From Phallusia mammillata (lineage: Eukaryota), in contig OZ281497.1 of the NCBI GenBank assembly GCA_965637545.1, positions 2,356,001-2,420,000 on the forward strand: DNA of 64,000 bases, written 5' to 3'. Below are positions 23,801-64,000 of this stretch, one piece after another. Below the pieces are notes generated by a model that saw nothing but the letters and a program-made list of their open reading frames with translations, ran no database searches and had not been told where the DNA came from. The position numbers and the translations under genes were made by a program. Within the stretch, counting starts at the first letter, position 1; each line of letters opens with the position of its first letter.

Positions 23801-26800
23801 GTTTTAAACATTGGTCTGTGGTTTCCAACTAATATTTCTATCATAAGACAAAGAAATTATAGAACAACGCATTATATGGAAATGATTTACCTGCACTGAT
23901 GACAACAGCGATTGTTAAAACGTCTACATAAAGTATCCTATATACACAAGTACTCTGACAGTTATTTCTTTGATTAAATCACTTTTCAAGTCCGTGTAAA
24001 GTGTTCCTAAATTTACAACGCATTTTATAAACAACTAAATTTCCTTAGATTTGCATGATTTAAACCACAAAGAAGATTCATTTGTCCATCTTCCACAGAA
24101 CATTGGGCAAACAAGAAATGGCCTTGTACAAATTCAAAAAAGTGGTAAGTCTTCACATATATTTACCCCTCATTCATAAAACAGATCAAATACACGACAA
24201 AGTACCCAACTAAGGACCAGCAACAAATCCCTGTGGCACCCTGGGGGGTCAGGTGTCAGTTACTTGGTGACAAAAAGTTTGTGCAAAGATAACAGGGGCT
24301 GAAAATAAGTCATGACACCTGCTACAACGCCTACGAATAGCTCGGGCGAGCGCCAAAAATGTTACACCTCAGTGGGGGTCTTGTACATACTATTACATTC
24401 AGTCTTGTAGTTTTGAGAGGGACAAGGAGGAAACGATTGTACACCTACATGAGTTTCAAGTGCTTAAACCGGGTAAGGGCGGTACGGCTGCCTCCTGGGG
24501 GGGTGCCATGCCCTTCTGTTGATGGGTTCTATTTGCTGGATACGGATTTAGAATCGCCTTGTTGTTATTCCAATCGAACGTGGCTGCTGGTAATCGTAAA
24601 GGATTAATGTTTGAGCCATGTTTCCGGTTTAAAATTCTAAAGGTCATTTTTTGACCAATAAAACGCCTGTTAAGAAACACGTGATTTAAAACTGTTTTAG
24701 GCAAAAAGGTGATGTAGAAGTTGCTAATTTCCGAATAATCTCCATAAAGCAAGGTATTGGGCGTTTAATCAGGAACATATAATCCAGTTCAAATGAAAAA
24801 AATGTGCACAATTTTATTACATGAACTTTTTCATTCATTTACCAAAAAGCGATTGTAAACCATCAAGAAACGACAGAACCCGCTTGACTTACGAAATCTG
24901 TATTACAAAGTCCAAAACCGTTACAATATGAACACATTGACCACTTGAAACAGTTCTCACTATTACTTGAAGTAAGAAAACACAATGACTCAACAAAACT
25001 TGAAAGTTTTCAATATTCCGGAAATTAACACGGGGACAAACTCGATAGCGTGCGTTTGTAGCATTCAACAAACCGAAAAACACTTGATAAAACGTGACAG
25101 AATCAACTTCTACTTGCCGAACGAGGTTTCATGAAGCACGTACAACCTCTATAACTCACTACTAACGCCCTTAAAACGTCAAAAGGTAAAAAGTCAAACG
25201 TAAGTTACAACCACAACGTAAAGTGTCGCAGCACGTAGCCTGTATTGGTCTTAACGTGTCAATTCCATAGAGTACTAGAAAGCGATAACTGAAACTTACG
25301 GACATGCCTGGGCTATAACGGTCAGTTTCCGATCGTTTTAGATTATTTTAATTAATTATGAAAATAAATTTAGCAACTAATTTCCAAACAACACGTTTTA
25401 ACCCAGAGAAAGCGGGCTTTATTGAGTCTGTGAAAAGTTTTCATGAACACACGATACAAATGAGTCTGTGAAATGTTGTCATGACCACCTCACGGCACTT
25501 ATGAGTCTGTGAAAGGTTTCATAACCACCTCACGATACAAATGAGTCTGTGAAATGTTTTCATGACCACCTCACGGCACTAATGAGTCTGTGAAAGTTTT
25601 CATAACCACCTCACGATACAAATGAGTCTGTGAAATGTTTTCATGACCACCTCACGGCACTAATGAGTCTGTGAAAGGTTTCATAACCACCTAACGATAC
25701 AAATGAGTCTGTGAAATGTTTTCATAACCACCTCACGACACAAATGATTCTGCCATAAGACTCTGTGAAAAGTTTTCATGACCACATCAAGCACAAATAT
25801 GTTTGTGAAATATATTTAACCGGATAAATTAGCCTGTTTATTATTGAATTCCTAAATGCTGGACCCAGTAACAATACGGGAGTAGAAACAAACGAAATTG
25901 ATATTACTGAAGGAATTAAGGTATAGAAGTTGTTCCCCTTAAAATCATTAAGAATGCCGCTGCAGTTAAAACCGTAAGTCTCAAAACCAAGACAAAGGTC
26001 ACCGGACGAACGAATTTCAAATATCCGCAGCTGCAAGGCAATTTGTTTCAACAAAGCCAAGCTGCATGTGTCAAAGCCGCGGTCAGGTACATAATGGACA
26101 TCTGCAGGTTTCATTACCCATACACGGCTGCGAAAAACGATTAGAGATGTAATCAATTACAACAAACATCTTGCAAGGAATTCTGCATGAACGCGATTAG
26201 TATTTGCACCTGCTCCAGTCATCAATGTTTGTACGCAATACACCAGTCGCAGTAGTAATCAATAGCTGCGCACCTAACAACGTATTTGAATATTCTAGAA
26301 CAGTGGTTCTCCACAGTTTTTATTTTCGTTGCCGCTTGAGAACAGTTAGACGCACTTCATTTTACCCTTTCTTTCAAAAAAACTAAATTACGAAGTGGGA
26401 CGTCACAGAAAAATGACATCACTCAAGGATGACTTCACGAAACTAACAAATGATGATGTAATTCCCCCCTAAAACGTCAATTTGCACCTTGGGGAATGAT
26501 TACCAACGACTGTTTTAGAAACTGGGAATCTCTTGAACAATCATTTGTTTAAAATAAGAAGTACTTTAACGGGAGGAGTATAAATACACAAATAAACTTT
26601 GTTACTATTATCTCTTAATATTGTTACTATTATCTCTTAAGTAACAGATAACAGTACCTCCGTCTTGGACTATTTAAGAGCTAACTTTAAGCCACAGCTT
26701 TAACTTTTCCAAAATTGATTAGGTCTAAAGCAGGGGGGCACAACCTGCCGCCACACAAGTTTACAACAGAATAGATTCACTCTCGATCGGGCATTGATAA

Positions 26801-41656: not shown

Positions 41657-42082
41657 ATGCCTCACTTAAAAATCTACATGACTCCAAGTAACGAAGGAAA
41701 ATCGTTCGCTTACATCAGGAAAATTTTCATTATTGTCGATTCTGAACACAAGTCAAAAGTGTACGAGCAAGTAAAAACGGTTTGCTCAACCCAATACCAC
41801 CGAACTATCCCATCTCGTCCGTCTGTGGCCAGAGGTAGCAAGGGAGTCATAGCGATTGAAGTCAAAATACCTGGCGATTTTCGCAAAATATCGGAATGGT
41901 ATCACTGGTTCAATGTGGAATTGCTGGACAGACTTGAAACAAACGGATGGGATTTGCTAATGGGGGAAAATGTTTTTGATGAAAAGGGACTGATTTTTAA
42001 AAAGGTTTTTGTTGAAAACAAACCACAACTCACATTGGATGAAGTTTTAAAGGCCGGAAGAAAACGTAAAAGAAGAATTTAA
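41657..42082 (+). CDS. Uncharacterised small-protein family member A3 (141 aa)
   Basis: MPHLKIYM...PSRPSVARGSKGVI...NVELLDRLETNGWDLLMG...GLIFKK...KAGRKRKRRI is clearly homologous to A1/A2. Confidence 0.85.
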   Translation: MPHLKIYMTPSNEGKSFAYIRKIFIIVDSEHKSKVYEQVKTVCSTQYHRTIPSRPSVARGSKGVIAIEVKIPGDFRKISEWYHWFNVELLDRLETNGWDLLMGENVFDEKGLIFKKVFVENKPQLTLDEVLKAGRKRKRRI

Positions 42083-45848: not shown

Positions 45849-46159
45849 GTGCCAAACAAAAAACATATCGTCTTCTTGTATTTCGATAAAATCGTATTTT
45901 TTTGTATTTTAAGTCCTATTACGTGCAATGTAATAAAACCACATTTTTGTTTTATTAAGCCTTGGAAGGTTCTGCTGCAAGTACTTTTACCTGAATTATG
46001 GGTTTAGATTTGTCGAAAAGCTCCTATATGTTTAAAAATCCTTTGCTATCTTCCACTGAGGTCATTAACCAATTGGATTAAATATGAAAGCACCTAAAAT
46101 CCATGTGGTAATCGATTCAAACATTCATGTTATGTAAGTGCATAATAGCCACTAGATAA

Positions 46160-46230
46160 GTCGCGGACAAGGGAAACTTCCAGCAAAACTAAAATCTCGC
46201 CGTAAGTTTGTCACGTGATTTATAAAATGC
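46160..46230 (+). promoter_or_regulatory. kB-like + GTCACGTGA module, copy 1 (upstream of B1)
   Basis: GGGAAACTTCC at 46171, GTCACGTGA at 46210, then TATAAAA. Confidence 0.5.
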
Positions 46231-46282
46231 TTGACGCCAATCTTTTCGTAAATGAGGACTTATGCTCATTGCGTGTATGGGG

Positions 46283-46651
46283 CAGTGGCGTAGCCAGGAA
46301 GGGGCCAACGGGGCCATGGCCCCTTCTAAATTTTCAAAGTTGTGTATTAAGAAACTTTAATTTAGTGTAGTTTTGTCCCTTATCATTGTGGTTTCGTCTT
46401 TCAACTATCAAAGGAATATATTAAAAAAAACAAAAAAAAACTGTTGTCACCAAGTTGTAAGCTGATATCCATGCTTTTTATGGTGATGTAGACATGGAAT
46501 GAATCAATAAAGCGTTTGGCTGTCCCTTCGAACCAAAGTTGGCAAGTCACGTGTTTAGTAAAAGCACGCCTTACGCCGAGCATTAACAAAAAGTTGTATT
46601 AGACAGCAAACTATTTGGCTCTCCCAAAATTTTCGTCTGCCTACGCCACTG
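46283..46651. mobile_element. MITE with CAGTGGCGTAG TIRs (8-bp TSD, hAT- or P-like)
   Basis: CAGTGGCGTAG / CTACGCCACTG with a perfect TSD GTATGGGG. Confidence 0.9.
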
Positions 46652-47322
46652 GTATGGGGCAAAAAAACAAAACAAAAATATAAAGTCTTATATTTAATCC
46701 GAATAAACTATACATTATTTACTCCTGTAAGTTTTTGTTTCCGCTAACGAGAGCAACGATGATTTTTGTAAATATGCGATTAAACTAGCTACTTGTTTGT
46801 AGAGCGTAGCAGAACAGGAAATAAAATTCATTCAGATAAATGATTATCAAAAGTCATTTTAAAGGTGTTCTATTTCAAAAAGTCGTTGATAAAATAGCTA
46901 GTTAAACTTGCTTATACCCAGAATTAGCATACAAGACAATGTCAGTTTTTTAATTATGTTTCTGCAAGTTTTCAAATTGCATGACAAAACTTACATCATG
47001 ACAGTTTACTTTCCAAATTTACTCTTCCAGGCAAGCGTGTGCGTAGATCTAGTCACAGAATCCGGAAGTACGTGTGAAGGCATTGGACCGCTATCGCCTT
47101 ATGTTACTTGATTCAGTTTGTATTTCAGCAACATAATAAAATAAAACAGTAAAAGAGGAACAGAAAATAAAAGAAAGAAAAAAACCATGAGAAAATTATG
47201 TGAACGAAACCGTTTTATTTAACGGTATAGCGCAAACGAAAAACGACCAACAAGTACTTTACTATTCTGAACTCTTTTTACAGTATTTATATTATGGAAC
47301 GAAATTGTGCCTCAGTTTAAAC

Positions 47323-47637
47323 ATGGCTTACGTGAAAATCAATTTGGAACGGTTAGACTTCGTGGAACAGGATATGCTGTCCGTTATATTTCCAGAAGGT
47401 TTAAACAAATTTGTAAACGATGAGTTAACAAGGGGATTGGGGTTTCGCACATTACCTTCTGGTTCAGCCCTTAGTGGAATTCAGAAAGTTTCATTTGAAG
47501 TTTTCTCAAACAACGACCCGTTATACCAAATGGCAAATCTTCAAATCATCAACAAAATGGCTGAGCAAGGATTTAGACCTATAGATGGATTTAACGCATT
47601 CAGTAAAAATGGAATCTTGTTTGAACGAAGGCAATAA
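47323..47637 (+). CDS. Uncharacterised small-protein family member B1 (104 aa)
   Basis: MAYVKINL...ANLQIINKMAEQGFRPIDGFNAFSKNGILFERRQ. A splice acceptor lies about 40 nt upstream of the ATG, as in the other B copies. Confidence 0.85.
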   Translation: MAYVKINLERLDFVEQDMLSVIFPEGLNKFVNDELTRGLGFRTLPSGSALSGIQKVSFEVFSNNDPLYQMANLQIINKMAEQGFRPIDGFNAFSKNGILFERRQ

Positions 47638-48754
47638 AGTTAATGTCCTGTCATGGTCAATGAAGATGTACGACTAGATTACGGATTATTTTTTGTCAAA
47701 AATACGTGTGTGCACATGTAACAATATATTAAGACTAATATTTAATCTGATTAAACTATAACTTACATTATTTTCTCGTGTGTGTTTTTGCTTTTGCTAG
47801 CGACAGCGGCGAGGATTTTTGCAAACATGCGGTTAAGCTAACTACTTGTTTGTAAAGCGTAGCAGACCAGGGAAAAAAATCAATCAAATAAATGATTCTC
47901 AAAAGTCGATTTGAAGGTGTTCCCTTTAAAAAAGTCAAATTATCTGCTTTTTTAATGTTGAACCAACCATCAGTTGATTAGGTATTGCAACAATTTATTC
48001 CCAAAGTTAAATATTTACATTTGGGACTAGTATTACCTGTTGACTCATAGTGTACTCTTAAACATTATGTACTCAATTTTTTACGTTATGTACTCATCTA
48101 CTTAAAGGTTATGCACTCATTTTTTTTTCATTTCTAAATATTTGTCGTACGGTCGGCTGACAGCTTGGTACGCAAAGCCGTCACGCTGAATGCATTTTTG
48201 CAGAGGGTGCTGCTGCAAAACAGCAACTGCGGCAACATAAACGCTAAAAGTGACTATTGTTGTTGTATTATTTCTGGCTGTATAGCACTGGTTGTCTTTT
48301 AATTTAATGCAAAGAATGGGATGGTTGTATTAATGAGAGACTGAAGAATTATTGGGAGCATAATCAAGTGCAAAGATATTTACATTGAATAAATAGCTAG
48401 TTAAACTTGCTTATATCAAACGTACGTTTGATAGCTGGCAATATCATGATCAATGGCATATTTTACAGTTAACGTGAAGAGCCAGGAAGTACTTGGGACG
48501 GCGTAGAACCGCTATCGACTTATGCTGCTTGACTTAGTTAGTGTTCACCATTGAAAAGCACAAACTACTGTTGATTTTAAGTCGGTTTCAATGTATACTT
48601 ATTTTCTACTTAAATCAACCTATTGTTTATATTAATGTAACGTGTTGTCTTGCTAATGTGTTCTTAATAGTATTCTAACATGTGTTAAATTGTTGCGGTT
48701 AGTATGCAGCTGTCCGCCATACTTTGCACACAGACACAGGCATGTGTTCTACAC

Positions 48755-49215
48755 CAGTGCTCTTTAATCGGTGTGCACGATATACATGAGGTGCACCAGT
48801 ACGAAGGGGTATACAAGGGTGCATCACAAACTTTTAATGAACCATTAATATTTGACTTTCAGGATATTAGAAAAAAGATGTAGGTTTCAAATGATGTGAC
48901 CCAAGGTAAACTTTTTTAATGTTTTATCCCCGTGTCAAGTTTGATAGTGTCTGTGTTACAGTCGGGTTATATTAGGTCATCGAGTTTTGGCTTTTTTTCC
49001 GGTGTTTCACAGAAAATTCGCGAACATATGCTTGGAGTATTGGTAGCAATTCATGCAATTTTTGCGAGCTCCGCTCGGTTTGATTGACATGATGATATGC
49101 ATAATGATTTTTCATATCGCTTTTATCTCAGTTAACCTTTTTAAGTAAACAGGGTGCATGAGTTCGTCACAACAACTTTAAGGGTTCACCAAGCCAAAAA
49201 AGGTTGAAGAGCACT
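48755..49215 (+). mobile_element. hAT-type MITE, same family as 1-344
   Basis: CAGTGCTCTTTAA... / ...GGTTGAAGAGCACT, with internal homology to 1-344. Confidence 0.75.
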
Positions 49216-49296
49216 TTTTTTTTTTTGTTTTTTTTTTTTGTCACTGCTGCGCACAAGTGACTATAAAAGTGTTTACAAACGGCGTTGACTAATGTA

Positions 49297-49380
49297 GCCT
49301 CATACCACTGATAATGGGATGAGAATTTGCCAAAACTTTTTGAGCATATCGCTTTACTCGTCTATTTGGGTCGTTATACT
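49297..49380 (+). mobile_element. Decayed copy of the hammerhead-bearing short repeat
   Basis: gcctcataccactgataatgggatgagaatttgccaaaact...tatttgggtcg has a mutated core. Confidence 0.55.
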
Positions 49381-49434
49381 GCATGGTCTTTAGACTAATG
49401 GTGTTATTGATTTGGGAAACGTTTGATGAAAAAT

Positions 49435-49560
49435 TATTATTAAATATGAATAATTATATATAATTATAATTAAGCCTATTATTAAATATGAATAATTATA
49501 TATAATTATAATTAAGCCTATTATTAAATATGAATAATTATATATAATTATAATTAAGCC
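49435..49560. repeat. AT-rich 42-bp tandem repeat, 3 copies
   Basis: TATTATTAAATATGAATAATTATATATAATTATAATTAAGCC x3. Confidence 0.9.
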
Positions 49561-49728
49561 TGTCGCAGTTACCAACCAGCATATATTTTGTACTTACATT
49601 CAAATACTTTTGAAGGCAAAAATGGGAGTACTTGCTACAATTTGGTTAGAGTTGTCTGTTTAACATTTGGATTTCTTACAGATTTTTTTGATTGTTTACT
49701 TTTTTACTCCAACGTGCTGTATAGGAAC

Positions 49729-50061
49729 ATGGTGTACCTAAAAATCATCATAGACAGAATTAACTTGCGTTTATCCTTTCACGTTGCCGACGCATATGTT
49801 GAAGAAGTTGACGAGATTGTGACAAAGTTACTGAAAAACCCGTTCAGGCCATTTTATGAACCAAACCGCGAGGAACAACCCAGCCACCGGGAATCCCAAA
49901 GCCGAACAAAATGTGTCATAAAGGGTCTTGTCTACGTAGCTGATTGGCAACAGACTATGTCAGTGAGCTTAATGGATGAACTGGAAAAAATTGATTGGGA
50001 ACTGAAAAGCGGAAAAAGTTTAGCGGAAGACGACGGGCTGCTGTTTTACAAAGACGACTGA
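49729..50061 (+). CDS. Uncharacterised small-protein family member C (110 aa, divergent)
   Basis: MVYLKIII...SVSLMDELEKIDWELKSGKSLAEDDGLLFYK, preceded by the acceptor tag/gaacATG. Confidence 0.75.
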   Translation: MVYLKIIIDRINLRLSFHVADAYVEEVDEIVTKLLKNPFRPFYEPNREEQPSHRESQSRTKCVIKGLVYVADWQQTMSVSLMDELEKIDWELKSGKSLAEDDGLLFYKDD

Positions 50062-50127
50062 TTTATTCTAAAAAAGTGCTGAAAATTTGATAATAACTTT
50101 GAAAAATTGAGATTGCATTTTATAACA

Positions 50128-50286
50128 CAGTAAAATCAATGGACGATAAAATCCTTGGTAAAACAGAATCAGTCGGTTCAAATAAAGGAATATATGGGCT
50201 ATAATCGCACTTGTGGCATTATCAGTTCCTGGAAATCGAAACAAAAATCGATGTAAAAATGGATTTTATCGTCCATTGGTTTACTG
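50128..50286. mobile_element. Foldback element with ~27-bp inverted arms (Tc1/mariner-like ends)
   Basis: CAGTAAAATCAATGGACGATAAAATCC / GGATTTTATCGTCCATTGGTTTACTG-TA. The right part and its flank are also homologous to about 7315-7440. Confidence 0.6.
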
Positions 50287-51039
50287 TATTATAGTTAAAA
50301 AGGCAACCTAAGCCATGCTGTTGACGATTTTGATCTATTACTAAAGTTGTCATTTTGGATTTCATACAGACTATTTTCTGATTGCAGTAATGCTAAACCA
50401 AATAACCTTAACCTTTTTCTTTTGTTGATAACTTAATAGATTTCGAACCTAAAATTCAACCTAAGTTCTTTGAGGCGATAATTTAACTCAACTAAAATTT
50501 GCCTATAACTTTGATTTTAACCCATAACATATGTCAAATTTTTCCTGGTCAAAGAAAATTCTAGTTAATATGTTGGCACTGGTCACATGATTCTGTGAAT
50601 CGCCGTGAAAGTTTGATGGTTTTATTTTTTGAGATTACACAATAAATTTCTAAAGAGCGTTGTGTTTTTACTACTTTAATCTGCAGCGGGTCGATTTATT
50701 CGAGATAAAAGGGTGCTTGGTAGGAGAAACTAGTGTATGGAGTAGTTGTTGATTACTTTTCAAAAACGAAGCTTCGCTCACGTTTTGAAATGAATACAAA
50801 CTATTTAACCCTGGTCTGTCAATCATGTTCTGCATTTTCAAGTTTTATCTCGCTTTAAAGAACTGTTTCAGATTTGTTGTATCACAAAAACGATTTGTTG
50901 TTTCGTTAGTGCAGGTTTTGAGAGCGGATGGTTAAGTCAGCATTAACAAAATGATGTACAATTGCTGTCACGTATCGCCGCAGTTTGCAAACATACTTAC
51001 TAGTCCATTGCAAGCAAACCTTGCAAAAAATAAAGCGGT

Positions 51040-51127
51040 GCAGTCACGAACATGGGAAACTCCCTACGAAATCAGTCTCGACACGGGTTTGTCACGTGAT
51101 TCGCGTGAAGTCTGCGCCACCAATCAG
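51040..51127 (+). promoter_or_regulatory. kB + GTCACGTGA module, copy 2, with candidate 5'UTR donor (upstream of B2)
   Basis: GGGAAACTCC at 51054, GTCACGTGA at 51091, CAG/GTAAAC at about 51127. Confidence 0.55.
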
Positions 51128-52260
51128 GTAAACATTTGTAAGTAATATTATTGCGCTTGTTCTTATTACATGTAGAGTCAACAAAAGAAACAAGCTGGTT
51201 GGCTTTTATTAACGGAAAAACTGTACCCATGGTTTATCTTTCTCAAGCGCGTAAACGGTAAAAAGAGTTGCAAGCTTAAATTAAAAATCACAGGCTTTGA
51301 TTCGATACACTGGCATTTTTGTTACGTTTTTATTTTGTCATCTATTTACGACGTCATAACATATTTCTATGTCGTGTTCGCTGTAACGAATTGTCGAGGG
51401 GACGTGGCCCCACGCTGCTGAGAAACCGGCAAGTTGGAGTTGGAGTTGGTGTTGAACGGTGGTTGTGTCGAGACTGTATATCTGCGCTGCTTGCCTTTTT
51501 ATCGTTTTACTCTATTAATACAAGTTAATTTGGGTACTGACAGCCCGTTATTGCAGCAGAACCAAACAAAGGCGTAACATTTTCACCTACGTTTCGACTT
51601 GATTCGAGCTCGGCCTTTTTTAATTGGGTTCGGGCTGAAGTTGTGGTTTGTATTTTTCGGTTCCGGCCCCAATGTCATGCCCTATAGCTCTTACTACTTC
51701 GGGCGATGTTTCTTAACATGTTACTGCATAGTTGGGTCAATGGGCAGTTTTGATAATACAAATCTAATTAATGCGAAAACTATTATTTTGCAGACTTATG
51801 AAAAACTGGCTATTAGAGCTGGTGTTGCGTTTTTGTAATTAAACAACAATATAATCGGGTTTCATATAACCTCTTAGAGTGTATACCCCACATGCGGGGA
51901 ACATAAATATCATTCGGTATACCATGTCATGCGTTAACAGCCTTCACGAAAGAAGGCCAATTTAAACAAGATTGTAATATTTGTGCAGCAGCGGCTTGAG
52001 ATGCTAAGTTAAACACTAAACGCCATAAGATACTTCACAGCAGAAAAAGCAGCCTAGCACAAACGATGTACATGTTTTGAACAAAGATAGCTTTTGAAAA
52101 AAGGAGCGGATAAACAAAAGGGATTTGAAACAGTTTTGACGGTAGCGAATAAAAAAAAGGAAGGACAATAAATGTATGTAGCCTCAGGCCATTGTTATTT
52201 TTAATTCTTTTGATTTTGCAGTCTTCATATCATCAAACGAAGTTGTGTATTAGTTTTAAA

Positions 52261-52590
52261 ATGCTGACTTACGTGAAAATGTATCTGAGTCGGACCGGTG
52301 ACAAATCGTACCTGTCAGTTATATTTCCAAACGTTTTGGAGGAATTTGTAACTAATCAGCTAACACAGGGATTTGCAATTAGAGATTGTGAAGGTCCTTC
52401 CGGTTCAAAGGGTGTTGGAGTTCAAATAATTGAATTTGGACTTAATACAAACTTCAAAAACGAAAACGCCCCAAATGTCCAGTTGATGAACCTTGGAATA
52501 ATACACAAAATGGCAAATGAAGGATTTCGCCCCATAGATGGCTGTAATGCATTCAGTGAAAAAGGAATCTTATTTGAAGAATTGCAATAA
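52261..52590 (+). CDS. Uncharacterised small-protein family member B2 (109 aa)
   Basis: MLTYVKMYL...MNLGIIHKMANEGFRPIDGCNAFSEKGILFEELQ. Confidence 0.85.
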   Translation: MLTYVKMYLSRTGDKSYLSVIFPNVLEEFVTNQLTQGFAIRDCEGPSGSKGVGVQIIEFGLNTNFKNENAPNVQLMNLGIIHKMANEGFRPIDGCNAFSEKGILFEELQ

Positions 52591-52926
52591 AGTTGATGTT
52601 TTGTCATGTTCATGTAAAACTGTAAGATTTAACTGGAAACAATGTTTGACAAAAAAGCATCGGTGTAAAAGCATGTGGTATCTTTTCATTCGGTAATTTT
52701 ACGCAAATATATTTGTAACTTGATGAATTGTGTTTATTATTAATAAAACAGATTGTAAAAGTTGTAAAAAATTTCTAGATCCCCAAAACGACTTTTGATT
52801 GAAGGTTAATAACTTTTGACCAAAGGTAAATATTACAAACAAGCTGTTACATTGCTGATATCGCTGCAGTTGACAAGCAAACTTCACTTGCCTGTTGCGA
52901 ACAGACGTTTCAGTAAGTACAAAAGT

Positions 52927-53020
52927 GCAGTCGCCAACACGGGAAACTCCCTGCAAAACTAAAGTCTCGACACGAGTTTATCACGTGATGTGATAAATAA
53001 GTCTGCGTCACCAAGCAGGT
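52927..53020 (+). promoter_or_regulatory. kB + TCACGTGA module, copy 3 (upstream of B3)
   Basis: GGGAAACTCC at 52941, TCACGTGA at 52981, CAG/GTAAAC donor. Confidence 0.55.
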
Positions 53021-54165
53021 AAACGTTGACAAGTAATAAAAAATTGTCCTTGCTGCATAAAGAGTTAACTACAGAAACAATTTATTTGACGGCCAGAGGT
53101 GTTTAGGTGAGTGCTGAATCAAGCAACATTATATAATCTGATCTCGTTAACCTTTTGGAATTTATATTTGACATACTTGAACACAAATATCATTCGGTGT
53201 ACCATGCTGTGCGTTGACAGGCATCACGAAAGCAGGTCAATTAATACAATATTGTATAAATATTTGTGCAATAGTGGCTTCAGCTGCTGATGAAACATTA
53301 AACGCAATGAGTTACTTCAAAGCAGAAGAGCAGCCTACCACAAACGATGCACAGGTTTTAAACAAAGATTTAGTTCTTGAAAAGAGAAACAGAGAAACAA
53401 AAGAGACAGGAAATGTTGTGCTTTTAAGAACTTAAAAGAAGACTTGTGCTTTTAAGAACTTTAATACACTGCCATACATAGTTAACTGAATGCTTCATAC
53501 GCCACGCAACCAGCTGGGTGTTCTACAAACTAGGCCGCCGGTTGGAAAATAATCTGATAACGATTAGTTAACGTGTGTATTGGTCACGTTGCGTCAAGGT
53601 TCGAAATTGCTTGATACAGAAAAATGACTAAAAGCTTGGGACTGTGTGTCAACGTACGTATTAAAACCAGTAAAAATATGGATTTTGTGGTGGTGTAGGC
53701 CTATGCGTTACGGAACTATTTTGGGCTCAAACTATCGGGAATATCTCACCATCAAAGTCAAATATACAGCGCACTGGTTTAATATTAGGCGGTAAAACAT
53801 TATTAAAACTATAAAATCAACAGCAATAAAAATACGTTAAACCGAAAAGCTCGTGGCAATCTTCAGCCAACACCTCGAGTTACCTGCGCCATCCAGAGAA
53901 AAAGCCTTTTTTTTACAAAACAGAAGGTTGCTTCCTTAAGTACCTGATTGGCAAAGCAGCGCAACTTGTGCAGCTCCACAGGTAAAGGAAGGAAATGCTA
54001 ATAACGTTTCACAAATCAAACAAAACAGAAGAAAAGAAATGTGCGTGACAGTGCCAAATCAGGAAAACAATATACAACAAACGATTATAGTACGCCAGGC
54101 CTATTAAAGGCGTTTTACCGAATCAGCCGGTCTTCCCAGCATTCCCATATGGATAGAAAAGCCTA

Positions 54166-54252
54166 GGCTGGAATAATTTAGGGTTACTTTTCAAGAATAA
54201 GGCTTAGCTTTAACTTTGAAATGAAATTACAATAAAAACGTTTGTTGTTCAT
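54166..54252 (+). pseudogene. 3' remnant of a D-type small-family gene
   Basis: Translates to GWNNLGLLFKNKA*L*L*NEITIKTFVVH and aligns at nucleotide level to the 3' ends of D1 and D2. Confidence 0.65.
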
Positions 54253-54897
54253 TATTATATTGTTCATTGTTTGTTGTTCATTGTATTATGTTTGTGTGTT
54301 AAAACTTATTTGGCTAACAACAATGCACTGCATTGTTTGAATTTTATAGCGTTTTGTTGTTGAGCTGTTTGATGGCTATTTAGAATTCTGTTTGTTTTTC
54401 ATTTTGTTTGACTGTTTTCATATCGAACAATGCAAACAGCGACTAAGGTCAGGAGGCGAAATAATTTCCCTTTAACAACACTGTCAACGTATTTTGTGCA
54501 AAAGGTGAACCAGGCCTATTATGCAGGTTGGCGTTGTAGCTGGACCAGTATATAAATTACAATACGGCAGTAAGTCTGTTGAGCTAAGAGAAAACATAAA
54601 TGTTTTGCGCATAGATGTTTGAATGCATGGTCAAATTTGATTTGGTAAAAGTTGTAACAAGATAGCCAAATCACGTATTGTTTACAAATTATAATTAAAA
54701 AATATATACGAAAAACGGGAATTTAAAAAGAGGAGAGGGCAAATAAACAAGTAAAAAGTCAGTTTATCAGCCAGCAAGGAATGCTTTTTACCACACAATC
54801 AACTTGGTTACTTGAAAAAAAAATTGTAGTCTAATTATTAATTATTTTTTAGTCTTGATATCATCGAACGAAGTTATCGCAGTGCATAAGTTGAAAT

Positions 54898-55278
54898 ATG
54901 ACTTACGTGAAAATGTATCTGGATCGTCCAAGCGACAACCCTGGACCTTTGGGAACTGGTCAACCGGTTATGGTGGTTATATTTCCAGAAAGTCTGGAGA
55001 AATTTGTAAATAATGAGTTAACCACGGATTTGGGGATTGGAGATCGTAACGTTTTTTCTGATTCAAAACGTTGCGAAGTTCAGAAAGTTCAATTTGGACT
55101 TCCAACGAACTTCGTAAACAAGAACGACCTTTCAGCCCAAATGGTCAATCTCGAAATAACACACAGAATGGCTAAGCAAGGATTTCGGCCAATAGATGGG
55201 TTTAATGCATTCAGTACCAATGGAGTTCTGTTTGAAAATTGCGACAAGAAAGTTGATGTTATGTCATACTCCTCGTGA
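54898..55278 (+). CDS. Uncharacterised small-protein family member B3 (126 aa)
   Basis: MTYVKMYL...VNLEITHRMAKQGFRPIDGFNAFSTNGVLFE. Confidence 0.85.
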   Translation: MTYVKMYLDRPSDNPGPLGTGQPVMVVIFPESLEKFVNNELTTDLGIGDRNVFSDSKRCEVQKVQFGLPTNFVNKNDLSAQMVNLEITHRMAKQGFRPIDGFNAFSTNGVLFENCDKKVDVMSYSS

Positions 55279-56082
55279 AGCTGTGTAATGTAATTGCAAG
55301 CGATTTCAATAAAACTGCATCTGTATAAATGTATGTTGCATTTTGTAATTTGTTTGTTTTGCCCTGATAAATCTTGTACATGCAAAATAAAATGAAGTCA
55401 AGGTTTTATCGTTACTTGAACAGACGTTGTAGAAAAAAGTGGGGTTGCAAACGTGTGAAATTCTTGCGCAACCTAAGTGTATCACATGACTTATAAAAAG
55501 CCCAGGCCATCTATAGCGGTTCTCTTTAAATAAGAAACTGATACTGTTGGTAATGTCTAACGACGAAATGCTTGTGTTTCATGAACTAAATACACTGCAA
55601 TATAGTTCATTATACATATGCATACACCACGCCATTGCACACAAGACATAGGTAAACAGAACGCTTAACTCTAAGCAAGCGTTGTAGGCTAGGATTGGTA
55701 AAAAGTTGATCTACGTACTGAGCAAGATATCGCTTTACTGCGGAAAACCCCTCAAAATAGTTCAAAATGTTTTAACTATGTTTTTAGTTAGGTAAGTGTT
55801 GACATAACTTCAATAGAAAGAATAGGAAAGTCAGGTTTTCTTTATTAGCTTAGGCCATAACAACAAATGACTAAAACTTATGCCTTTCTTAACCATATGA
55901 ATCAAAAGAGTGCAGGCATTACAAAGGTTTTAAAACAAATAGATCTTTATATAATATTTTCTTTTAAAGACGTATATTTCAAAGGGTTGTTTGGAGGAAT
56001 CTTGGATTATTCAGAACAATTTAACATAATTTTATAATTTGCAGCAATTTAAAAGAATTGAAGGAATTGTTTACTAGCATAA

Positions 56083-56469
56083 ATGGTTTACATGAAAATC
56101 CATAAAGCAGACCTTAGAGATGTTCAATTTAACGCTTTAGTCCCACATCGGCTTTTAACTCAGGTTGTAGCAGATTTGAATATCGTAATGCTACCACAAC
56201 ACTTCAACCTGTCCAGAGATTTGTCACCAATTGATAATTCAAATGTCCAAATCAATGTTTTGGAGTATTCACTAATAAGTGATCATGAGGATGACAAATG
56301 GTGAAAAACATTTAACGTACAGCTGATCAATTTACTGGAGATGAAAGGATGGAATTCGGTGGACGGAACTAGTGTCTGGAATAATTCTGGATTACTTTTC
56401 AAGAAGGAAGCTTTGCTCCAGTTGTGAAGTGAAATTACAGTAAAATCGTTTGTTGTTCGTTTGACATAA
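56083..56469 (+). pseudogene. Small-family D-type gene D1 with in-frame TGA codon(s)
   Basis: MVYMKIHK... The frame continues through TGA 56302-56304 into NVQLINLLEMKGWNSVDG..WNNSGLLFKK. A second TGA is at 56425-56427. Confidence 0.8.
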
Positions 56470-56684
56470 AACGTCTGTCAATTATATACTGCCATTTCAA
56501 ATTTTATTGTGTTTTAATGTCAAGCTGTTTTAAAAATGACTTGCTGGTTCGTTAGTGCAAGTTTTGAACGCGGGGGGGTTGAGTGAATATTATCAACAGG
56601 GTGTAAAGTTGCTGTTATATCGCTGCAGTTGGCAACATACTTCACTTGACCTTTGCAAACAAACGTTGCAAAAAGTACAAAACC

Positions 56685-56746
56685 GCAGTCGCGAACATGG
56701 GAAACTACCGACAAAACTAATGTCTCGACACGAGTTTGTCACGTGA
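56685..56746 (+). promoter_or_regulatory. kB-like + GTCACGTGA module, copy 4 (upstream of B4)
   Basis: GGGAAACTAC (one mismatch) at 56699, GTCACGTGA at 56738. Confidence 0.45.
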
Positions 56747-57614
56747 TGTCAAAATTTTTATTCGGGATTGAAATTCACACGCGTGAGTGTTTATCTTAGG
56801 ACCGTGCGCTTTCGAGTCTGGGTCGGGTTGGGTTAGGGCTTCAGTCCCAATAACACAGGCTAGTTAAACATTAAACTTGGGAAAAAAATAAAAAATATAG
56901 ACTTTGTAGTGGTATATGTGTTACGGAATTATTTTGGGCCCGAACCCCGTCCTGTTTCTTAAATTTAGGGAATTGGCTTTGTTATGGATTTTGGGTTTGT
57001 ACTTTTGGGTTCGGGCCCCAATTTTATGCCCTCTTACAACTGTGAGCGACGTTTCTAACATGTTACTCCATGGTTAGGTAGTTTTAATAAACAAAAATCT
57101 ACCTAAAGCGAAAATTATTATTATGCAGACTTATGAAATGCTGGTGATTAAAGCTACTTCAGTTGGTGTTGCGTTTTTGCATTTAAACAATATTATAACA
57201 TCACATAAACTTTTGGAATTTATATCTCACATGCGGTACATACCTATTATTCGGTATATCATGTCATGCGTTAACATCTTTCACAAAAGAAGGTCAATTT
57301 GAACGAGATTGTAATATTTGTGCAACAGCGGCTTGAGATGCTATTAACTATAGTTAAACATTACACGCCATGAAGATACTTCACAACAGAGAAAACAGCC
57401 TAGCACAATCGATGTACATGTTTTGAACAAAGATTAGGCTCTTGAAAAAAGGAAAGGAGAAACAAATGAATAACAAGATCAAATGAACGAAACCTTTTTG
57501 AGGGGAAGGAAACAATCAACAAAGAATGTATGTAGCCACAAGTCGCACTTGTTTTTAATTCTTTTTATCTTGCAGTCTTGCTATCATCATACGAAATTGT
57601 GCATCAGTCGAAGC

Positions 57615-57932
57615 ATGTCGTACGTTAAAATGTATCGAGATAATGCTCCCGACAACAGACAGATTTTGTCCGTTGTATTTTCAAAAAAATGGAGTGGGTT
57701 CGTCACAAGTGGATTAAAGGAATTGGGCATAGAAATTCAATCCGCTGTTGATTCGGAAAATGGTCAAGTTCAGAAAGTTGAATTTAAATTTCCCATCGAC
57801 TTTGCAAATAATTGTTTCTTTGAAATGAAGAACGTTGAAATAATGCAACTAATGGCAAAGCAAGGATTTCGGCCCATAGATGGATTTAATGCATTCAGTG
57901 AAAATGGAGTTCTGTTTGAACTACTTCAATAA
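57615..57932 (+). CDS. Uncharacterised small-protein family member B4 (105 aa)
   Basis: MSYVKMYR...KNVEIMQLMAKQGFRPIDGFNAFSENGVLFELLQ. Confidence 0.85.
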   Translation: MSYVKMYRDNAPDNRQILSVVFSKKWSGFVTSGLKELGIEIQSAVDSENGQVQKVEFKFPIDFANNCFFEMKNVEIMQLMAKQGFRPIDGFNAFSENGVLFELLQ

Positions 57933-59511
57933 ACTTGATGTTTTGTCATGATCAGTGTAAAGCTGCACGGTATAATTAAAAATGATTTTTTAAACGCATT
58001 TGTGCAAATGTATGTGGCATTGTTTTTTCGTTAATTGACTTTGATAAATCCGTAACATGCTGAATGTGACTCCATACGGTTTTATCGTTATTTGAACAGA
58101 CGTGGCAGAAAAAAACGAGATGCTAAACCAAAACTCCTTGTGCAAAAAATGTATTTTACGTGACTTATGAAATAGGCCTATTTATAGCGGTTCTCTCATA
58201 AAAAGATACTATCAATGGTGTTAAAGTAATTTTTTTAAATTTCAAAAAAATAAAACAGAACGAAAAATGACTCATGCTTTCATGAACTTTGATACACTGC
58301 CATATAATGCATAGTTAATTGAATGCTTCATAGGCCACGCAAACAGTTGGGTGTTTCTACAAACTAGGCCGCCGGTTATAAAGTAATCTGACGATTAGTT
58401 AACATGTGTATGATTGGCCACGTGGCGTCCTTGTCAATATGGTTCGAAATCGTTTGACAAAGAAAAATGATTTAAAGCATAGGACTGTATGTCAACGTAC
58501 GTATTATCTATAAAATTTAAAAGAACTAAAAAAGATTGCTTATAGGGGCAAACGGTTTAGTTTTACATTTGCAATAAACCTCCTCTAACGTATGTCCAAA
58601 ATGATTTTCGCCTCACCCTATAGTTGCTTATTTGTAAATGGACATCTAAAATAATTAAAAAGTATAAGTTTATTTTTGTAACTAACACTCTAAAACAACA
58701 GATGCATGTCAAAATGTTATTTTTTTGTGATTGTTGCCATCTAACTTTGTTTTCCGATACTCAACTGCCAGAAACTAGACATAGGTAAACAGAATGTTAA
58801 ACATTAACTTAAAGCAAACTCCACACCACTTGCTTATCTAAGTTGTTCTACGTTTTAAGTAAGGTATTAATTTGCTGTGGAATGAGCCCATGAAATAATT
58901 AATATATATTTTTATAATTATATTAAATAATTAATATTAGTCGTATATTTTTAATTTTTAGAATTTTTTTGGTATGTTGTTTTCTAAGGTATGTTGTTTT
59001 CTGTTTTCTAAATTTTTTTAATATGTTGTTTTCTTTTTTTTGGTATGTTGTTTTCTTTTTTTGGTATGTTGTTTTCTAAGTGTTAAAATGACTTCAGTAG
59101 GGAGAATAGGAGAGCCAGGTTTACTCTATTAGTTTGTGCTGAATGACAGCATCAAAATTTCAAAAAATGACTAAAACTTATTTTTTTTACCATGTTAACC
59201 AGGAAAATGGCATTTTTACCTCAGGAAAAAAACATAACATAAAGCATTGTGCTTATCAGTAGACCATTCAACTTTTTACATGAAACCAAATGATTGTATT
59301 GTAGCAATTACAAAAAAGTTTTAACACAGCAAAACTGCAGGCATTACAAAGGTTTTAAAATATGTATTACCTTTTGTACAATAATTTCCTTTCAAAGACA
59401 TTTTACCTCGAAAGTGTTATTTCGAGAATATTCTTTTATTCTTAAATATTTAACGTAACTTTATGATTTGCAGCAATTGAAAAGATTTAAAGGAATTGTT
59501 TACTAGCATAA

Positions 59512-59894
59512 ATGGTTTACATGAAAATCCATAAAGCGGACCTTAGAGATGTGCAATTTAACGTTTTAGTACCACATCGTCTTTTACTCAGGTTGAAGCA
59601 GACCTGAATCTCGTAATGCTACCACAACACTTCAACGTGTCCAGAGATTTGTCACCAATTGATGGTGCAGTTGTCCAAATCAATGTTTTGGAGTATTTAC
59701 TAACAAGTGGTCATAAGAATGAAAAATGGCAAAAAACACTTAACATACAGCTGATCAATTTATTGGAGATGAAAGGATGGAATTTTGTAGGCGGAACTGT
59801 CTGGAATAATTCTGGATTACTTTTCAAGAAGGAAGCTTTGCTCCAGTTGCAAAGTGAAATTACAGTAAAAACGTTTGTTGTTCGTTTGACATAA
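59512..59894 (+). pseudogene. Small-family D-type gene D2 with a 1-nt frameshift
   Basis: ATG GTT TAC ATG AAA at 59512. CTTTTACTCAG versus D1 CTTTTAACTCAG shows one A missing near 59586. The rest is open (ORF 59616-59894). A sequencing error cannot be excluded. Confidence 0.75.
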
Positions 59895-60046
59895 AACGTC
59901 TGTCAATTATGTACTGCTATTTCCAGCTTCATCATGTTTTGATGTTGAGCTGTTTTTGAACTGGTTAAGATTGGTTGTGTCACAAAAGTGATTTGCTGCT
60001 TCGTTCATTATATCGATGCAGTTGGCAAGCAAACTTTGCAAAACTA

Positions 60047-60459
60047 CCGTATTTGCTCGATTGTAAGCCGCGGCTTATATTGTTTTTTAGCTGTCGTTTG
60101 TGCGGCTTATAATCGAGGGCGGCTTACAATCGAGGGCGGCTTATATTTTAATTTTATACCGAAATCATTTCTACACTCCAACATTTTAAATTATTTGGGG
60201 TTCAAAACATGTATGCATGTACAGATTATACGTCGATATACGTTCTGTCGGGTACAGTTATTAACGTAACTAACAGATATGGGCAAATAGTCATACCATA
60301 TAACTACAGAATGATGTATTAGGAAACAATCGTATCTAAAATTCCAGCGTGCGGCTTACAATCGAGGGCGGCTTACATTATTTTATTAACACCTCAACAT
60401 GCGGCTTACAATCGAGGGCGGCTTATAAACGAGGGCGGCTTACAATCGAGCAAATACGG
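60047..60459. mobile_element. Tc1/mariner-superfamily (pogo/Tc2-like) MITE, 413 bp
   Basis: TA-CCGTATTTGCTCGATTGTAAGCCGC ... GCGGCTTACAATCGAGCAAATACGG-TA, with subterminal GCGGCTTACAATCGAGG repeats. Confidence 0.9.
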
Positions 60460-60467
60460 TACATAAG

Positions 60468-60560
60468 TGCAGTCGCGATCATGGGAAACTCCCTACGAAA
60501 CTAAAGTCTCGACACAAGTTTGTCACGTGATATGATAAATAAGTCTGCATTATCAAGCAG
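60468..60560 (+). promoter_or_regulatory. kB + GTCACGTGA module, copy 5 (upstream of B5)
   Basis: GGGAAACTCC at 60483, GTCACGTGA at 60522, CAG/GTAAAC donor. Confidence 0.55.
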
Positions 60561-61894
60561 GTAAACATTGACAATAATAATAATAATAGTGTGCTTGTCC
60601 TTTTGCATGTCAAGCCAACAGAAGCGTTTCATTGACTTATTGATAATAACTCTCTGGCGAAACTAAAGTCATTCTTGTCAGTGTTTTATCTTTCACACGA
60701 TCGATCTGACAATTTTCTCACGTATGCAAGCGGCGAAAAGAGTTGCAAGTTGTACCCTGCGTTTTGGTTCGGTTTCTGACCTCTCGGTCAACACCACAGG
60801 ATTGATTTGGGCCTTGCTTTGCACTCGGTATCATTTTTGCTGCATTTTCGCCGACTTTTTGGACTGATTATATAGTTTTGCGTTTTTTTTAAATCGGTAT
60901 TGGGTCGGATTTCGGGCTTGTATTTTCAGGTTCAGGGCCTCAATTTCATGCCATCTTACAATTCTAAACGGTGTTTTTAAACTGCATGTTACTACATGCA
61001 TGGCATGGTAAGATAGCGCAGTTTTAATGAACAGAAATATGCCCAAAATGAAATTTACAATTTTGCAAGCTTCTGAAATGACGGTTAGAGCTCTCTAGGT
61101 TTGTTTCGGGTAACGAAATCCTACTCTGGTCTCATCAAAATAGTTTCAATGTTTACCTACAGTATTTCAACTATAAAACAATAAAACCAACGACAAAATC
61201 ATTGGCTTAACACAACCAGCCAGTTTCAAAAGAAGGAATATATATTTCGCCCAAATGGCACCACCAGTTTCTTATTAAAATAGATTCGGTCTCATATAAC
61301 CCCTTGAAGTGTGTATGTTTACATGCGGTAATATACTATAACGTTTGGTATCATGCAGTGATTAGCACCGACCTTTGCACGCAACAACTAGTCTAACGAA
61401 AGCAAGCCAATTTGAACAAGATTGCAAAAATGTTTGCGCAACACCGACACTATATTCTTGTGCTGCGAGTTAAATATTAAATGCCGTGAAACAACTTATA
61501 AAAGACACAGATTTCGTGGTGTTGTAGTTAGATTTGAAAATTTCAAACTGGACAGAATGTCTGTTGCGTTGTGATGCAGTTAAGTTTAGAAACAAGTTTT
61601 AAATATTTCAATGTAATGCTTAACTCTGTGGTCATAACTCTGAATAAATACTTCATTGTAAAAAGAAAGCATAAGTCCAAACGGTTTACAAGTTTTAATA
61701 AAAAAAATATTGACCAAAAAAAGACAGTAAAAGAGGAAAGAAAAGAAAAAACAAGTATAAAACCAAGGAAAAATTATGTAAACGAAACCGGTAGCGATAA
61801 TAAAATCGACCAAAGATCTAGTATTGTACTATATTGAACTATTTTTATTTTGCAGTCTTAATATCATCGAACGAAATTGTGCATCAATTGAAAT

Positions 61895-62200
61895 ATGGCT
61901 CACGTGAAAATGTATCTGGAACAACAGAATATACTGTCCGTAATATTTCAAGAAGATTTCAAGAAATTTCTAAACGATGAGTTAACAACGGGATTAGGAC
62001 TAGGACCTGCTCCAATCCCCTTCCCTTCAGAACTTGGTAAAGTTCAGAAAGTTACATTTGGAGTTCCCTCAAACTACAGCTCTTCAGCTCAAATGGCAAA
62101 CTTAGAAATCATCAACAGAATGGCAACGCAAGGGTTCAGACCCATAGATGGGTCTAATGCATTCAGCGAAAATGGAATCCTATTTCAACGACCGCAATAA
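61895..62200 (+). CDS. Uncharacterised small-protein family member B5 (101 aa)
   Basis: MAHVKMYL...ANLEIINRMATQGFRPIDGSNAFSENGILFQRPQ. Confidence 0.85.
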   Translation: MAHVKMYLEQQNILSVIFQEDFKKFLNDELTTGLGLGPAPIPFPSELGKVQKVTFGVPSNYSSSAQMANLEIINRMATQGFRPIDGSNAFSENGILFQRPQ

Positions 62201-62973
62201 AGTTCAAGTTTTGTCATGATGAAGAAAGCTGAGGGTATAATTGCAAGTGATTTCACGAAAATGCATATGTGTCAATAAATGTGCCGTTGTTTTAATCCGC
62301 TAATTTAACTTTAATAAATCCGCAACAAGCTAAATGATAGCAAGTAAGGTTTTGTTGTTATTTGAATAGACATTGTGTAAAAAAACAGTAGGGTAGTTAC
62401 AGTTAAATCTGTTTTACAAGGGGTGGTCTGATGTAAAAAAAAATCCTCTTTCTTATGCTGAAACCAAGACTGAGTATACGCAGTTATACGCAGTTGCACT
62501 TTTAATTGATAACTAATTATTTATGCATTTTTACCCGGGGTCAAAGGTTAGCGGGTAATTGCGTCACGTGACTTAAGAAAGAGGCTCAATCAGATTCGAT
62601 TTGAAAAGGGCACTGACAATGCTCACAGAGAAAATATAAATATCTGAAACCACAAGGACAAATGACCTAATGTTTTCGTAAACTTAATTACACTGCTACA
62701 AAATTCATTGCATGCTTCATACACCACGCAACGATCATATAGACTGTGGCAGACAGTTGAAAAAAACTGAATACAAGGACCTGGATCCTAAAATAACCCG
62801 ACAATTAGTTGAATGTTTGCTCAAATCCGTATTCACAACTTCCAAAAACCACAAATTAACGGCCGACGGCTCTTTGCTTTCACAGTAACTTGACCCGTAA
62901 GTGAAACTTGGGTTTTGCTTGTCACGAGGATTCATGAAACGCAAGTGGACTAAAAGACACAAGGTTGTGAACA

Positions 62974-63054
62974 ATGGCTTAACAAGGATTCAGACCCATA
63001 GATGGGTTTAATGCATTCAGTAAAAATTGAATTCTATTTGAACGACTGCAATAA
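62974..63054 (+). pseudogene. 5'-truncated B-type remnant
   Basis: MA*QGFRPIDGFNAFSKN*ILFERLQ* followed by a B-type 3' flank. The sequence upstream of it (about 62790-62965) is duplicated at about 63460-63665. Confidence 0.75.
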
Positions 63055-64000
63055 AGTTGTTTCGTCAAAGTCAATGCAAAAGCTGTACGGTATAATTACA
63101 AACAATTTAATCAAAAATGCATCTGTGCACATGTATTTGTCGTCGTTTCAATTCGTTAATTTGACTTTAATGAACCCGTAACATGCTAAATAGTATCAAG
63201 TATGGCTTTATCGTTATTTGAACAGACATTGCGTAAACAAATGAAAAAGTAGCGGGTAAATATAAGGACACGATGTGCGTCACTGTGAGAAAAAAACCTA
63301 AAGCATGAGATTGTATGGCAACGTATAATCCGTCTTTCAATTTTTTTAAAAAGTATGACGTTTAGGGGTAAACGGTTTAGTTTTACATTTGTAAAGATCC
63401 TTAACCGTATGGTACCACAATCTTCGTCTTTTTTAAGCACAAAAATCGTAAATACCTGCATCCTAAAATAACCCGACAATTAGTTGACAGTTTGTTCGAA
63501 TCAGCAACCGACATGGTCACGTGACGTTCCGCCGGGTAACGTTCAAAAGTCGCGAATTAACAACCAACGGCTCTTTGCTTTAATAGTAACTTGACCCGTG
63601 GGCGAAACTTGGGTTTTACTTGCCACGAGGATTCATGAAAAACAAGTGGACAAAAAGACACAACGTTGGGAGATCCTTGTTAATCCTACGTCTAGCATAC
63701 TGCAGAAGGTCGCAGTCTAATAGTAACTATTAACTAATTAGTGGGCATTGGTTAGTGCGGATATATTTAATGTACAATGAAAGGTTAAGTAAGTTTAAAG
63801 AGTCTCTCAGAGCGTTGTAAAGATGCAGGAAGATAAAAACGCGTTGTTTTAAAATGTGTTGAATGCAAACAATAAATGAGTGGAACACTATACACGAATC
63901 TGTTTTAAGTTTAATGATGGAAAGAAAAGTCCAAATAGAGTAGACGTAAAAAGTGACATGCTTTATTGTTTAAACGTTTAAGCAAATGTTTATGCCTCTA

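Follow-up and report, generated by a model that had tools for sequence, protein, structure and literature searches.

A conserved two-box module ahead of five small orphan genes of Phallusia mammillata as a candidate proximal promoter

A 64,000-nucleotide (nt) window of the Phallusia mammillata DNA (C4 2,356,001-2,420,000 of a 240-Mb genome) holds a cluster of small genes of the types A1, A2 and B, and each of the five intact B genes is preceded, at a distance of 0.9-1.9 kb, by one copy of a compact module that joins an NF-kB-like box (the kB-like box) to an E-box. The module is a block specific to the B genes and to this locus, kept by purifying selection, and its constraint, its uniqueness and its one-to-one pairing with intact genes are what would be expected of a shared promoter. 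We consider it somewhat more probable than the alternatives together, at roughly 0.55, that the module is the conserved proximal promoter of the B genes, with a transcription start site at a GTAAA just downstream.

A pattern search recovered all five modules at the positions given in a preliminary description of this DNA, with kB-like boxes beginning at 46171, 51054, 52941, 56699 and 60483. Aligned with one another, the copies share a common core of 61-68 nt with 42 invariant columns. The cores, numbered by the unit and the B gene to which they belong, are as follows.

46159 to 46221, forward strand: module core of unit 1 (B1); kB-like box GGGAAACTTCC at 46171-46181 and GTCACGTGAT at 46210-46219 (nhmmer E = 4e-20)
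51041 to 51101, forward strand: module core of unit 2 (B2); GGGAAACTCCC at 51054-51064 and GTCACGTGAT at 51091-51100, with a 2-nt deletion between the boxes
52928 to 52991, forward strand: module core of unit 3 (B3); GGGAAACTCCC at 52941-52951 and ATCACGTGAT at 52980-52989
56686 to 56749, forward strand: module core of unit 4 (B4); GGGAAACTACC at 56699-56709 and GTCACGTGAT at 56738-56747
60470 to 60532, forward strand: module core of unit 5 (B5); GGGAAACTCCC at 60483-60493 and GTCACGTGAT at 60522-60531

The kB-like decamer GGGAAACTCC, described earlier as an exact fit to the consensus GGGRNWYYCC in three copies and a near fit in two, is indeed exact at 51054, 52941 and 60483 and carries a single mismatch at 46171 (GGGAAACTTC) and 56699 (GGGAAACTAC), in both cases at position 9. 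With one mismatch allowed, it has seven matches in the window against 1.9 expected. Read as an 11-mer (GGGAAACTNCC), the box is invariant in 10 of its 11 columns, and all five copies have GGGAAACT-N-CC in common, which forms a quasi-palindrome of two G/C-rich half-sites. The E-box TCACGTGA lies downstream of the kB-like box in every module, at the near-fixed spacing that had been claimed for it (39, 37, 39, 39 and 39 nt from the start of the kB-like box to the start of (G)TCACGTGA); it occurs 10 times in the window, where 0.9 would be expected, and half of these occurrences are inside modules. In its longer form, the second box reads GTCACGTGAT in four copies and ATCACGTGAT in one, the copy at 52980, whose E-box reads ATCACGTGA. 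An apparent "allele" at 52980/52990/53005 in the DNA run X2 is most likely the unit-5 paralogue aligned on unit 3 and was not used.

Written as the strict pattern TCTCGNCNNNNGTTTNTCACGTGA, the module has exactly these five sites in the genome and none in the control, and a DNA search of the genome with the module as query returned the window copies only. The strict form is thus confined to the locus, and a transposon or dispersed repeat, which the preliminary description had named as a possible refutation, is ruled out. Beyond the five copies, a profile search detected two decayed ones in the same gene cluster. Several other identities could be rejected: a known RNA family, by the absence of an Rfam match; a conserved RNA structure, by the count of zero compensatory pairs in the module alignment; a hidden coding exon, by the absence of a frame open across all five copies and by the 2-nt deletion in unit 2; and a 3' element of an upstream A2 gene, by module 52941, which comes after B2 rather than after an A2 gene. 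The module is a repeated unit of ~60-110 nt in which some frames are open in some copies, as might be seen in a mobile-element fragment, a small RNA gene or a short coding exon, but its confinement to a single locus, together with the missing Rfam match and covariation and the broken reading frames, makes any of these three hardly credible.

The five modules stem from one duplicated ancestral unit, so their fixed spacing was inherited and does not record five independent events; what goes beyond chance is the retention of the module, not the spacing itself. The module cores differ from one another by 0.11-0.31 substitutions per site (Jukes-Cantor distance), compared with a synonymous divergence of 0.47-1.1 per site among the attached B genes, whose ratio of nonsynonymous to synonymous change (dN/dS) is 0.31-0.77. 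Divided by module part, the divergence amounts to 0-0.1 substitutions per site in the two boxes and 0.12-0.6 in the spacer, and in the 35 nt after the E-box it ranges from 0.4 to saturation, the youngest pair excepted. The comparison with neutral DNA that had been proposed earlier therefore comes out in favor of constraint, with the module more conserved than both its flanks and the synonymous sites of the B genes. When the divergent unit 1 is compared with each other unit by sensitive BLAST, only two islands align: the module itself (46159-46226, 73-82% identity, E down to 1e-12) and a second island, from 47276 onward, which comprises the acceptor, the leader and the coding exon. The ~1 kb between module and acceptor of unit 1 has no alignment to the other units, so that the module, whose persistence in the divergent B1 cassette had been remarked on before, is the sole aligning noncoding island there besides the acceptor region.

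The pairing of modules with genes is one-to-one, five with five, and follows the state of the gene. Ahead of a frameshifted sixth B gene, which lies outside the window (L021:3069-3353), the module profile finds two decayed copies at a distance of ~1 kb (L021:2038-2081 and 2240-2279), with the kB-like box gone in both and the E-box gone in one, and it finds no module for a B C-terminal fragment at 62948. The units have also recombined: the 5' part of unit 5 resembles unit 3, with the module and its downstream flank 88% identical, and its 3' part resembles unit 1, to which its coding exon is nearest. Such exchange is in keeping with a module that has no function and whose apparent conservation is due to common ancestry, recombination or gene conversion between the tandem units. 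A recent conversion tract would, however, be near-identical, whereas the module of unit 1 differs by 18-25% and has sharp edges; its flanks are unalignable on both sides, the substitutions avoid both boxes, and the copies ahead of the broken sixth gene have decayed. We consider a functionless module quite improbable in view of these observations.

The DNA that follows the E-box differs more strongly between units, and it is here that a start site is predicted.

46221 to 46253, forward strand: unit 1; canonical TATAAAA at 46221-46227, then GTAAAT at 46248-53, with the A at 46250 lying 29 nt after the start of the TATA box
51125 to 51133, forward strand: unit 2; CAG/GTAAAC, no TATA-like box, CCAAT at 51120-51124
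52992 to 53024, forward strand: unit 3; TATA-like GATAAATA at 52992-52999 and CAG/GTAAAC at 53016-53024, with the A at 53021 lying 29 nt after the start of the box
56783 to 56788, forward strand: unit 4; homologue of GTAAAC lost, donor-like GTGAGT 37 nt after the E-box, with an initiator-like TTCACA just before it
60534 to 60566, forward strand: unit 5; TATA-like GATAAATA at 60534-60541 and CAG/GTAAAC at 60558-60566, with the A at 60563 lying 29 nt after the start of the box

CAG/GTAAAC follows the module in three copies (units 2, 3 and 5), as originally stated, and the homologous place in unit 1 reads TTC/GTAAAT. From the start of the TATA-like box to the A of GTAAA the distance is exactly 29 nt in units 1, 3 and 5, and TATA boxes in Ciona are located at -32 to -29 (PMC4691747). 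This constant distance in three copies makes GTAAA a candidate start site rather than a splice donor, and it is probably the place of initiation. Upstream of the module, comparison of the units revealed nothing conserved in units 1 and 5. Directly upstream of module 60483 (60340-60450), the DNA has been replaced by tandem GCGGCTTACAATCGAGGGC-like units, and the usual upstream homology of unit 5 is shifted to 60008-60036. Related A2-type genes have an E-box-like site directly before TATAAAA, at 55483-55498 (ATCACATGACTTATAAAAA) and 49250-49268 (CACAAGTGACTATAAAAG), and both of these genes have their own YAG acceptor ~39-49 nt before the ATG; the A1 genes carry a CACTATAAAA of their own, ~100 nt ahead of the ATG. 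An E-box-like site followed by TATAAAA may represent the ancestral promoter design of the whole family.

Each B gene consists of a single predicted coding exon that begins at a conserved acceptor.

47284 to 47637, forward strand: B1 coding exon; acceptor AG at 47282-83, 39-nt leader, coding sequence 47323-47637
52222 to 52590, forward strand: B2 coding exon; acceptor AG at 52220-21, coding sequence 52261-52590
54853 to 55278, forward strand: B3 coding exon; acceptor TAG ending at 54852, 45-nt leader, coding sequence 54898-55278
57576 to 57932, forward strand: B4 coding exon; acceptor AG at 57574-75, coding sequence 57615-57932
61856 to 62200, forward strand: B5 coding exon; acceptor AG at 61854-55, coding sequence 61895-62200

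The acceptor, a T-rich tract followed by YAG, is present 39-45 nt upstream of the ATG in all five units, much as the preliminary description had it. In unit 3, ~1.4 kb has been inserted between the module and the acceptor, and between module 52941 and B3 there is also a high-copy dispersed repeat (54085-54132; DNA-run depth ~73,000 versus ~200), which recurs in many RNA-like contigs. The preliminary description had read the gene as promoter, short noncoding exon, intron and single coding exon. The promoter part agrees with the unique, constrained and paired module; the exon and intron are one of two possible structures, and trans-splicing is a strong alternative. The 16-nt Ciona spliced leader followed by GT has 3,789 matches in the genome compared with 5 in the control, among them long tandem arrays with a 553-bp period (C3:11108338-11147465), which are presumably arrays of the spliced-leader RNA gene. 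Copies in such number mark the genome as ascidian-type and imply that the organism trans-splices. Hence, the conserved acceptor may serve trans-splicing rather than close a cis-intron, in which case the 0.8-1.8 kb behind it would be an outron and not an intron. An outron must lack a working donor (PMC3074122). Where spliced leaders are in use, an acceptor conserved ahead of the ATG need not point to an exon further upstream.

RNA-like contigs were placed on a 6-kb stretch, 52050-58049, which covers B2 to B4. One 454-nt contig from the RNA-like run X1 is identical to 52223-52676 and so begins one base inside the predicted B2 exon, with no upstream exon or extra 5' letters attached, although contigs cannot show RNA ends. 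The B2 coding exon is transcribed, and the beginning of the contig fits the acceptor at 52222 and is compatible with both cis- and trans-splicing. Otherwise, X1 covers only the dispersed repeat within this stretch. No contig in X1, X4 or X5 joins an upstream exon to 52222 within 52050-58049, where modules 52941 and 56699 are uncovered, and two exact-protein look-ups for a spliced cDNA of B2 in assemblies gave no match. All searches were made with single exons rather than with a joined exon model.

Taken together, the following course of events can be proposed. A module of ~61-68 nt would act as the proximal promoter, passed on whenever the gene unit was duplicated and maintained by purifying selection. 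Its first box, the 11-bp quasi-palindrome GGGAAACTNCC, is of the type of a Rel-homology site (NF-kB / Rel / NFAT), and its second, GTCACGTGAT, of the type of a T-flanked class-B E-box (USF / MiT-TFE). In this layout the kB-like box would stand near -80, the E-box near -40 and the TATA-like box at -29 relative to a start at GTAAA, and the primary transcript would run for 0.8-1.8 kb to the polypyrimidine-YAG acceptor 39-45 nt before the ATG. The leader would probably be removed as an outron by spliced-leader trans-splicing, or else be cis-spliced from a nearby donor. What we infer here is that the module acts as a promoter, where transcription starts, how the transcript is spliced and which factors bind.

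A comparable design is found in Ciona troponin I (CiTnI), a TATA promoter whose transcript is trans-spliced to the spliced leader (PMC3074122; PMC4691747): the TATA box lies ~30 nt before the start (here a predicted one), the outron is A+T-rich, and the same 16-nt leader sequence occurs in the present genome. In CiTnI, the trans-splice acceptor is located at -58 to -64 before the ATG, in the B genes at -39 to -45. The two differ in the outron, which is 459 nt long in CiTnI as against a predicted 0.8-1.8 kb here, in the canonical TATA box, which is present in one of the five B units, and in that no leader-bearing read has been seen for the B genes.

Several observations weigh against a promoter with its start at GTAAA. 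The canonical TATA box is restricted to unit 1, and unit 2, the sole copy seen in RNA, has no TATA-like box at all. An E-box followed directly by TATAAA is not enriched across the genome (13 versus 20 in the control) and can be rejected as a general design of this genome. The predicted outron is longer than the 438 bp that Ciona outrons average (PMC4691747). CAG/GTAAAC is also plausible as a splice donor. B3 and B4 carry the module and have no RNA contig in X1, although contigs cannot prove absence. The stretch on which RNA contigs were placed, 52050-58049, begins downstream of module 51054, which belongs to B2, the one copy seen in RNA; the start site is a prediction. Finally, the strong GTGAGT at nearly the same place in unit 4 fits equally well a gene model in which the module is a noncoding first exon of ~90 nt that is joined by cis-splicing, from CAG/GTAAAC, to the coding exon at its acceptor, in line with the short noncoding exon envisaged in the preliminary description. 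Transcription would then begin at or upstream of the module, for instance at the invariant GCAGTC at its 5' edge, which agrees with a general initiator consensus, and the conservation would reflect downstream promoter elements or a function of the 5' untranslated region. This model accounts for the retention of GTAAA(C/T) in four of the five units, three of them with a preceding CAG, for the presence of GTGAGT 37 nt after the E-box in the very unit that has lost GTAAAC, and for an RNA contig that breaks exactly at the acceptor. It leaves units 1 and 5 with no conserved DNA upstream of the module that could serve as a promoter, however, and it would place the canonical TATA box inside an exon; three copies have an ATG with an upstream open reading frame of 7-15 codons in the would-be leader, and the module lacks the covariation of an RNA structure. 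The failure of any X1 contig to join an upstream exon to 52222 also speaks against it, if weakly, as overlaps of less than ~31 nt may not be placed. On balance, we regard a noncoding first exon as a serious yet rather unlikely interpretation.

The module could alternatively be a distal enhancer or regulatory block, with the true promoter located within a few hundred nt of the acceptor and a correspondingly short outron. The length distribution of Ciona outrons, which peaks near 100 bp (PMC4691747), would suit this arrangement, and units 2-5 share a CCAAT-containing island of ~50 nt that lies 275-460 nt ahead of the acceptor.

51946 to 51993: CCAAT island of unit 2
53226 to 53271: CCAAT island of unit 3
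57283 to 57330: CCAAT island of unit 4
61396 to 61446: CCAAT island of unit 5

This island is absent from unit 1, however, where the conserved noncoding DNA is limited to the module and ~50 nt around the acceptor, and the TATA-like box with its fixed 29-nt spacing adjoins the module and not the acceptor. A purely distal role for the module therefore seems improbable, and a proximal promoter remains our preferred interpretation.

As for the factors that might bind such a promoter, kB sites are defined by the consensus GGGRNWYYCC, with 11-bp p50-type variants, and are recognized by Rel-homology factors. The T-flanked class-B E-box GTCACGTGAC, the Coordinated Lysosomal Expression and Regulation (CLEAR) element, is bound by TFEB-TFE3-MITF and by USF, and T/A flanks are favored by MiT/TFE and USF over Myc-Max. 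Three of the five module copies match the kB decamer exactly, and the organism encodes Rel-homology domains (PF00554 above cut-off at two loci, C3:19.79 Mb and C1:8.01 Mb, in a family that also covers NFAT); unlike typical kB sites, two copies break the 10-mer at position 9, and the decamer is not over-represented in the genome (302 matches versus 274 in the control). The letters are also compatible with NFAT and with weak Su(H)-type or IRF-type half-sites. The module E-boxes carry the GTCACGTGA(C/T) core with T/A flanks, and a gene of the MiT/TFE family is present (PF15951, one match, 44.6 bits, C2:21343686). GTCACGTGAY is five-fold enriched genome-wide (4686 versus 917 in the control), which points to a site in wide use more than to a dedicated stress switch, and the E-box may be a general USF-type promoter site. 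Four further sites lie in the window, apart from those of the modules. The targets of CLEAR elements are genes of the lysosome and of autophagy; the B proteins, by contrast, are orphans, for which Pfam, relative and fold searches gave no link to immunity or lysosomes. Rel/NF-kB and MiT-TFE/USF are hence candidates only, a lead. The coordinated induction by innate-immune or lysosomal-stress signaling that the preliminary description inferred found no support: in X1, the one RNA-like run with signal, B2 alone of the three B genes sampled showed RNA. Lipopolysaccharide-responsive NF-kB signaling is reported from Ciona (PMC11310991, PMC9960688). That an orphan family has been wired by a 60-nt bipartite promoter to a combined Rel/NF-kB and MiT-TFE (or USF) input is, in our judgment, an unlikely extension. 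If it were true, then the B genes would form a lineage-specific set of inducible stress or immune effectors, and the module would be a minimal natural two-input promoter.

If the promoter interpretation is true, then the module is a compact, naturally replicated promoter with two invariant boxes in five diverged copies, and it would give a first handle on when an uncharacterized tunicate-only family is switched on. On the present findings, the retention of a probable promoter by tandem paralogues is nothing unusual.

The family of small genes occupies a single locus, from ~39.8 kb to the window end and ~10 kb beyond, and occurs nowhere else in the genome. The A1, A2 and B subfamilies are clearly homologous; their alignment shows a shared M-x-[YH]-x-K start and G[FW]...G..AF...G[IL]LF end. 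Their members are arranged as follows.

39859, 40640, 41657 and 43329: A1-type genes
49729; 56083-56420 (internal stop); 59616: A2-type genes, with more in L021
47323, 52261, 54898, 57615 and 61895: ATGs of the intact B-type genes
~62948-63076: B-type remnant, C-terminal fragment
L021:3069-3353, just outside the window: B-type remnant, frameshifted sixth copy

Next to intact B genes, the A2 copies seem to be in decay: in unit 4, the A2-type gene (56083-56420) has an in-frame TGA at 56302, and the copy at 59616-59894 has no N-terminal part. Downstream of B5, the palindromic GTCACGTGAC occurs twice in perfect form (62563-62572 and 63516-63525), adjoining a 134-nt repeat pair (62837-62970 / 63538-63671) and the B C-terminal fragment.

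The B proteins have no Pfam family and no relatives detectable by word search. A profile search of 1.8 billion protein representatives returned two matches, both A-type and both from the single run DRR090687, which derives from another organism (contigs L022 and L023). One is an A1-type protein of 141 amino acids, with coding DNA that shares ~70% identity with window 41723-42003; the other is a distant member of the family, of 111 amino acids. The module is absent from both contigs. Judged by these searches, the B family appears to be a set of orphan genes restricted to sea squirts (tunicates). The AlphaFold model of a B protein is confident, with a predicted local distance difference test (pLDDT) score of 83 and a predicted template modeling (pTM) score of 0.73, and its strands and helices come in the order b-b-a-b-a-b-b; it has no convincing match in the PDB or the Atlas, where the best ones are weak and mixed. 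No signal peptide is visible by eye, and the B proteins look like small cytosolic alpha/beta proteins.

Elsewhere in the window, there are two tandem repeats unrelated to the module: an 81-bp repeat at 25450-25752, with 3-4 copies that are 95-98% identical, and a GT-rich repeat with a period of ~106 bp at 12403-12798, with 4 copies.

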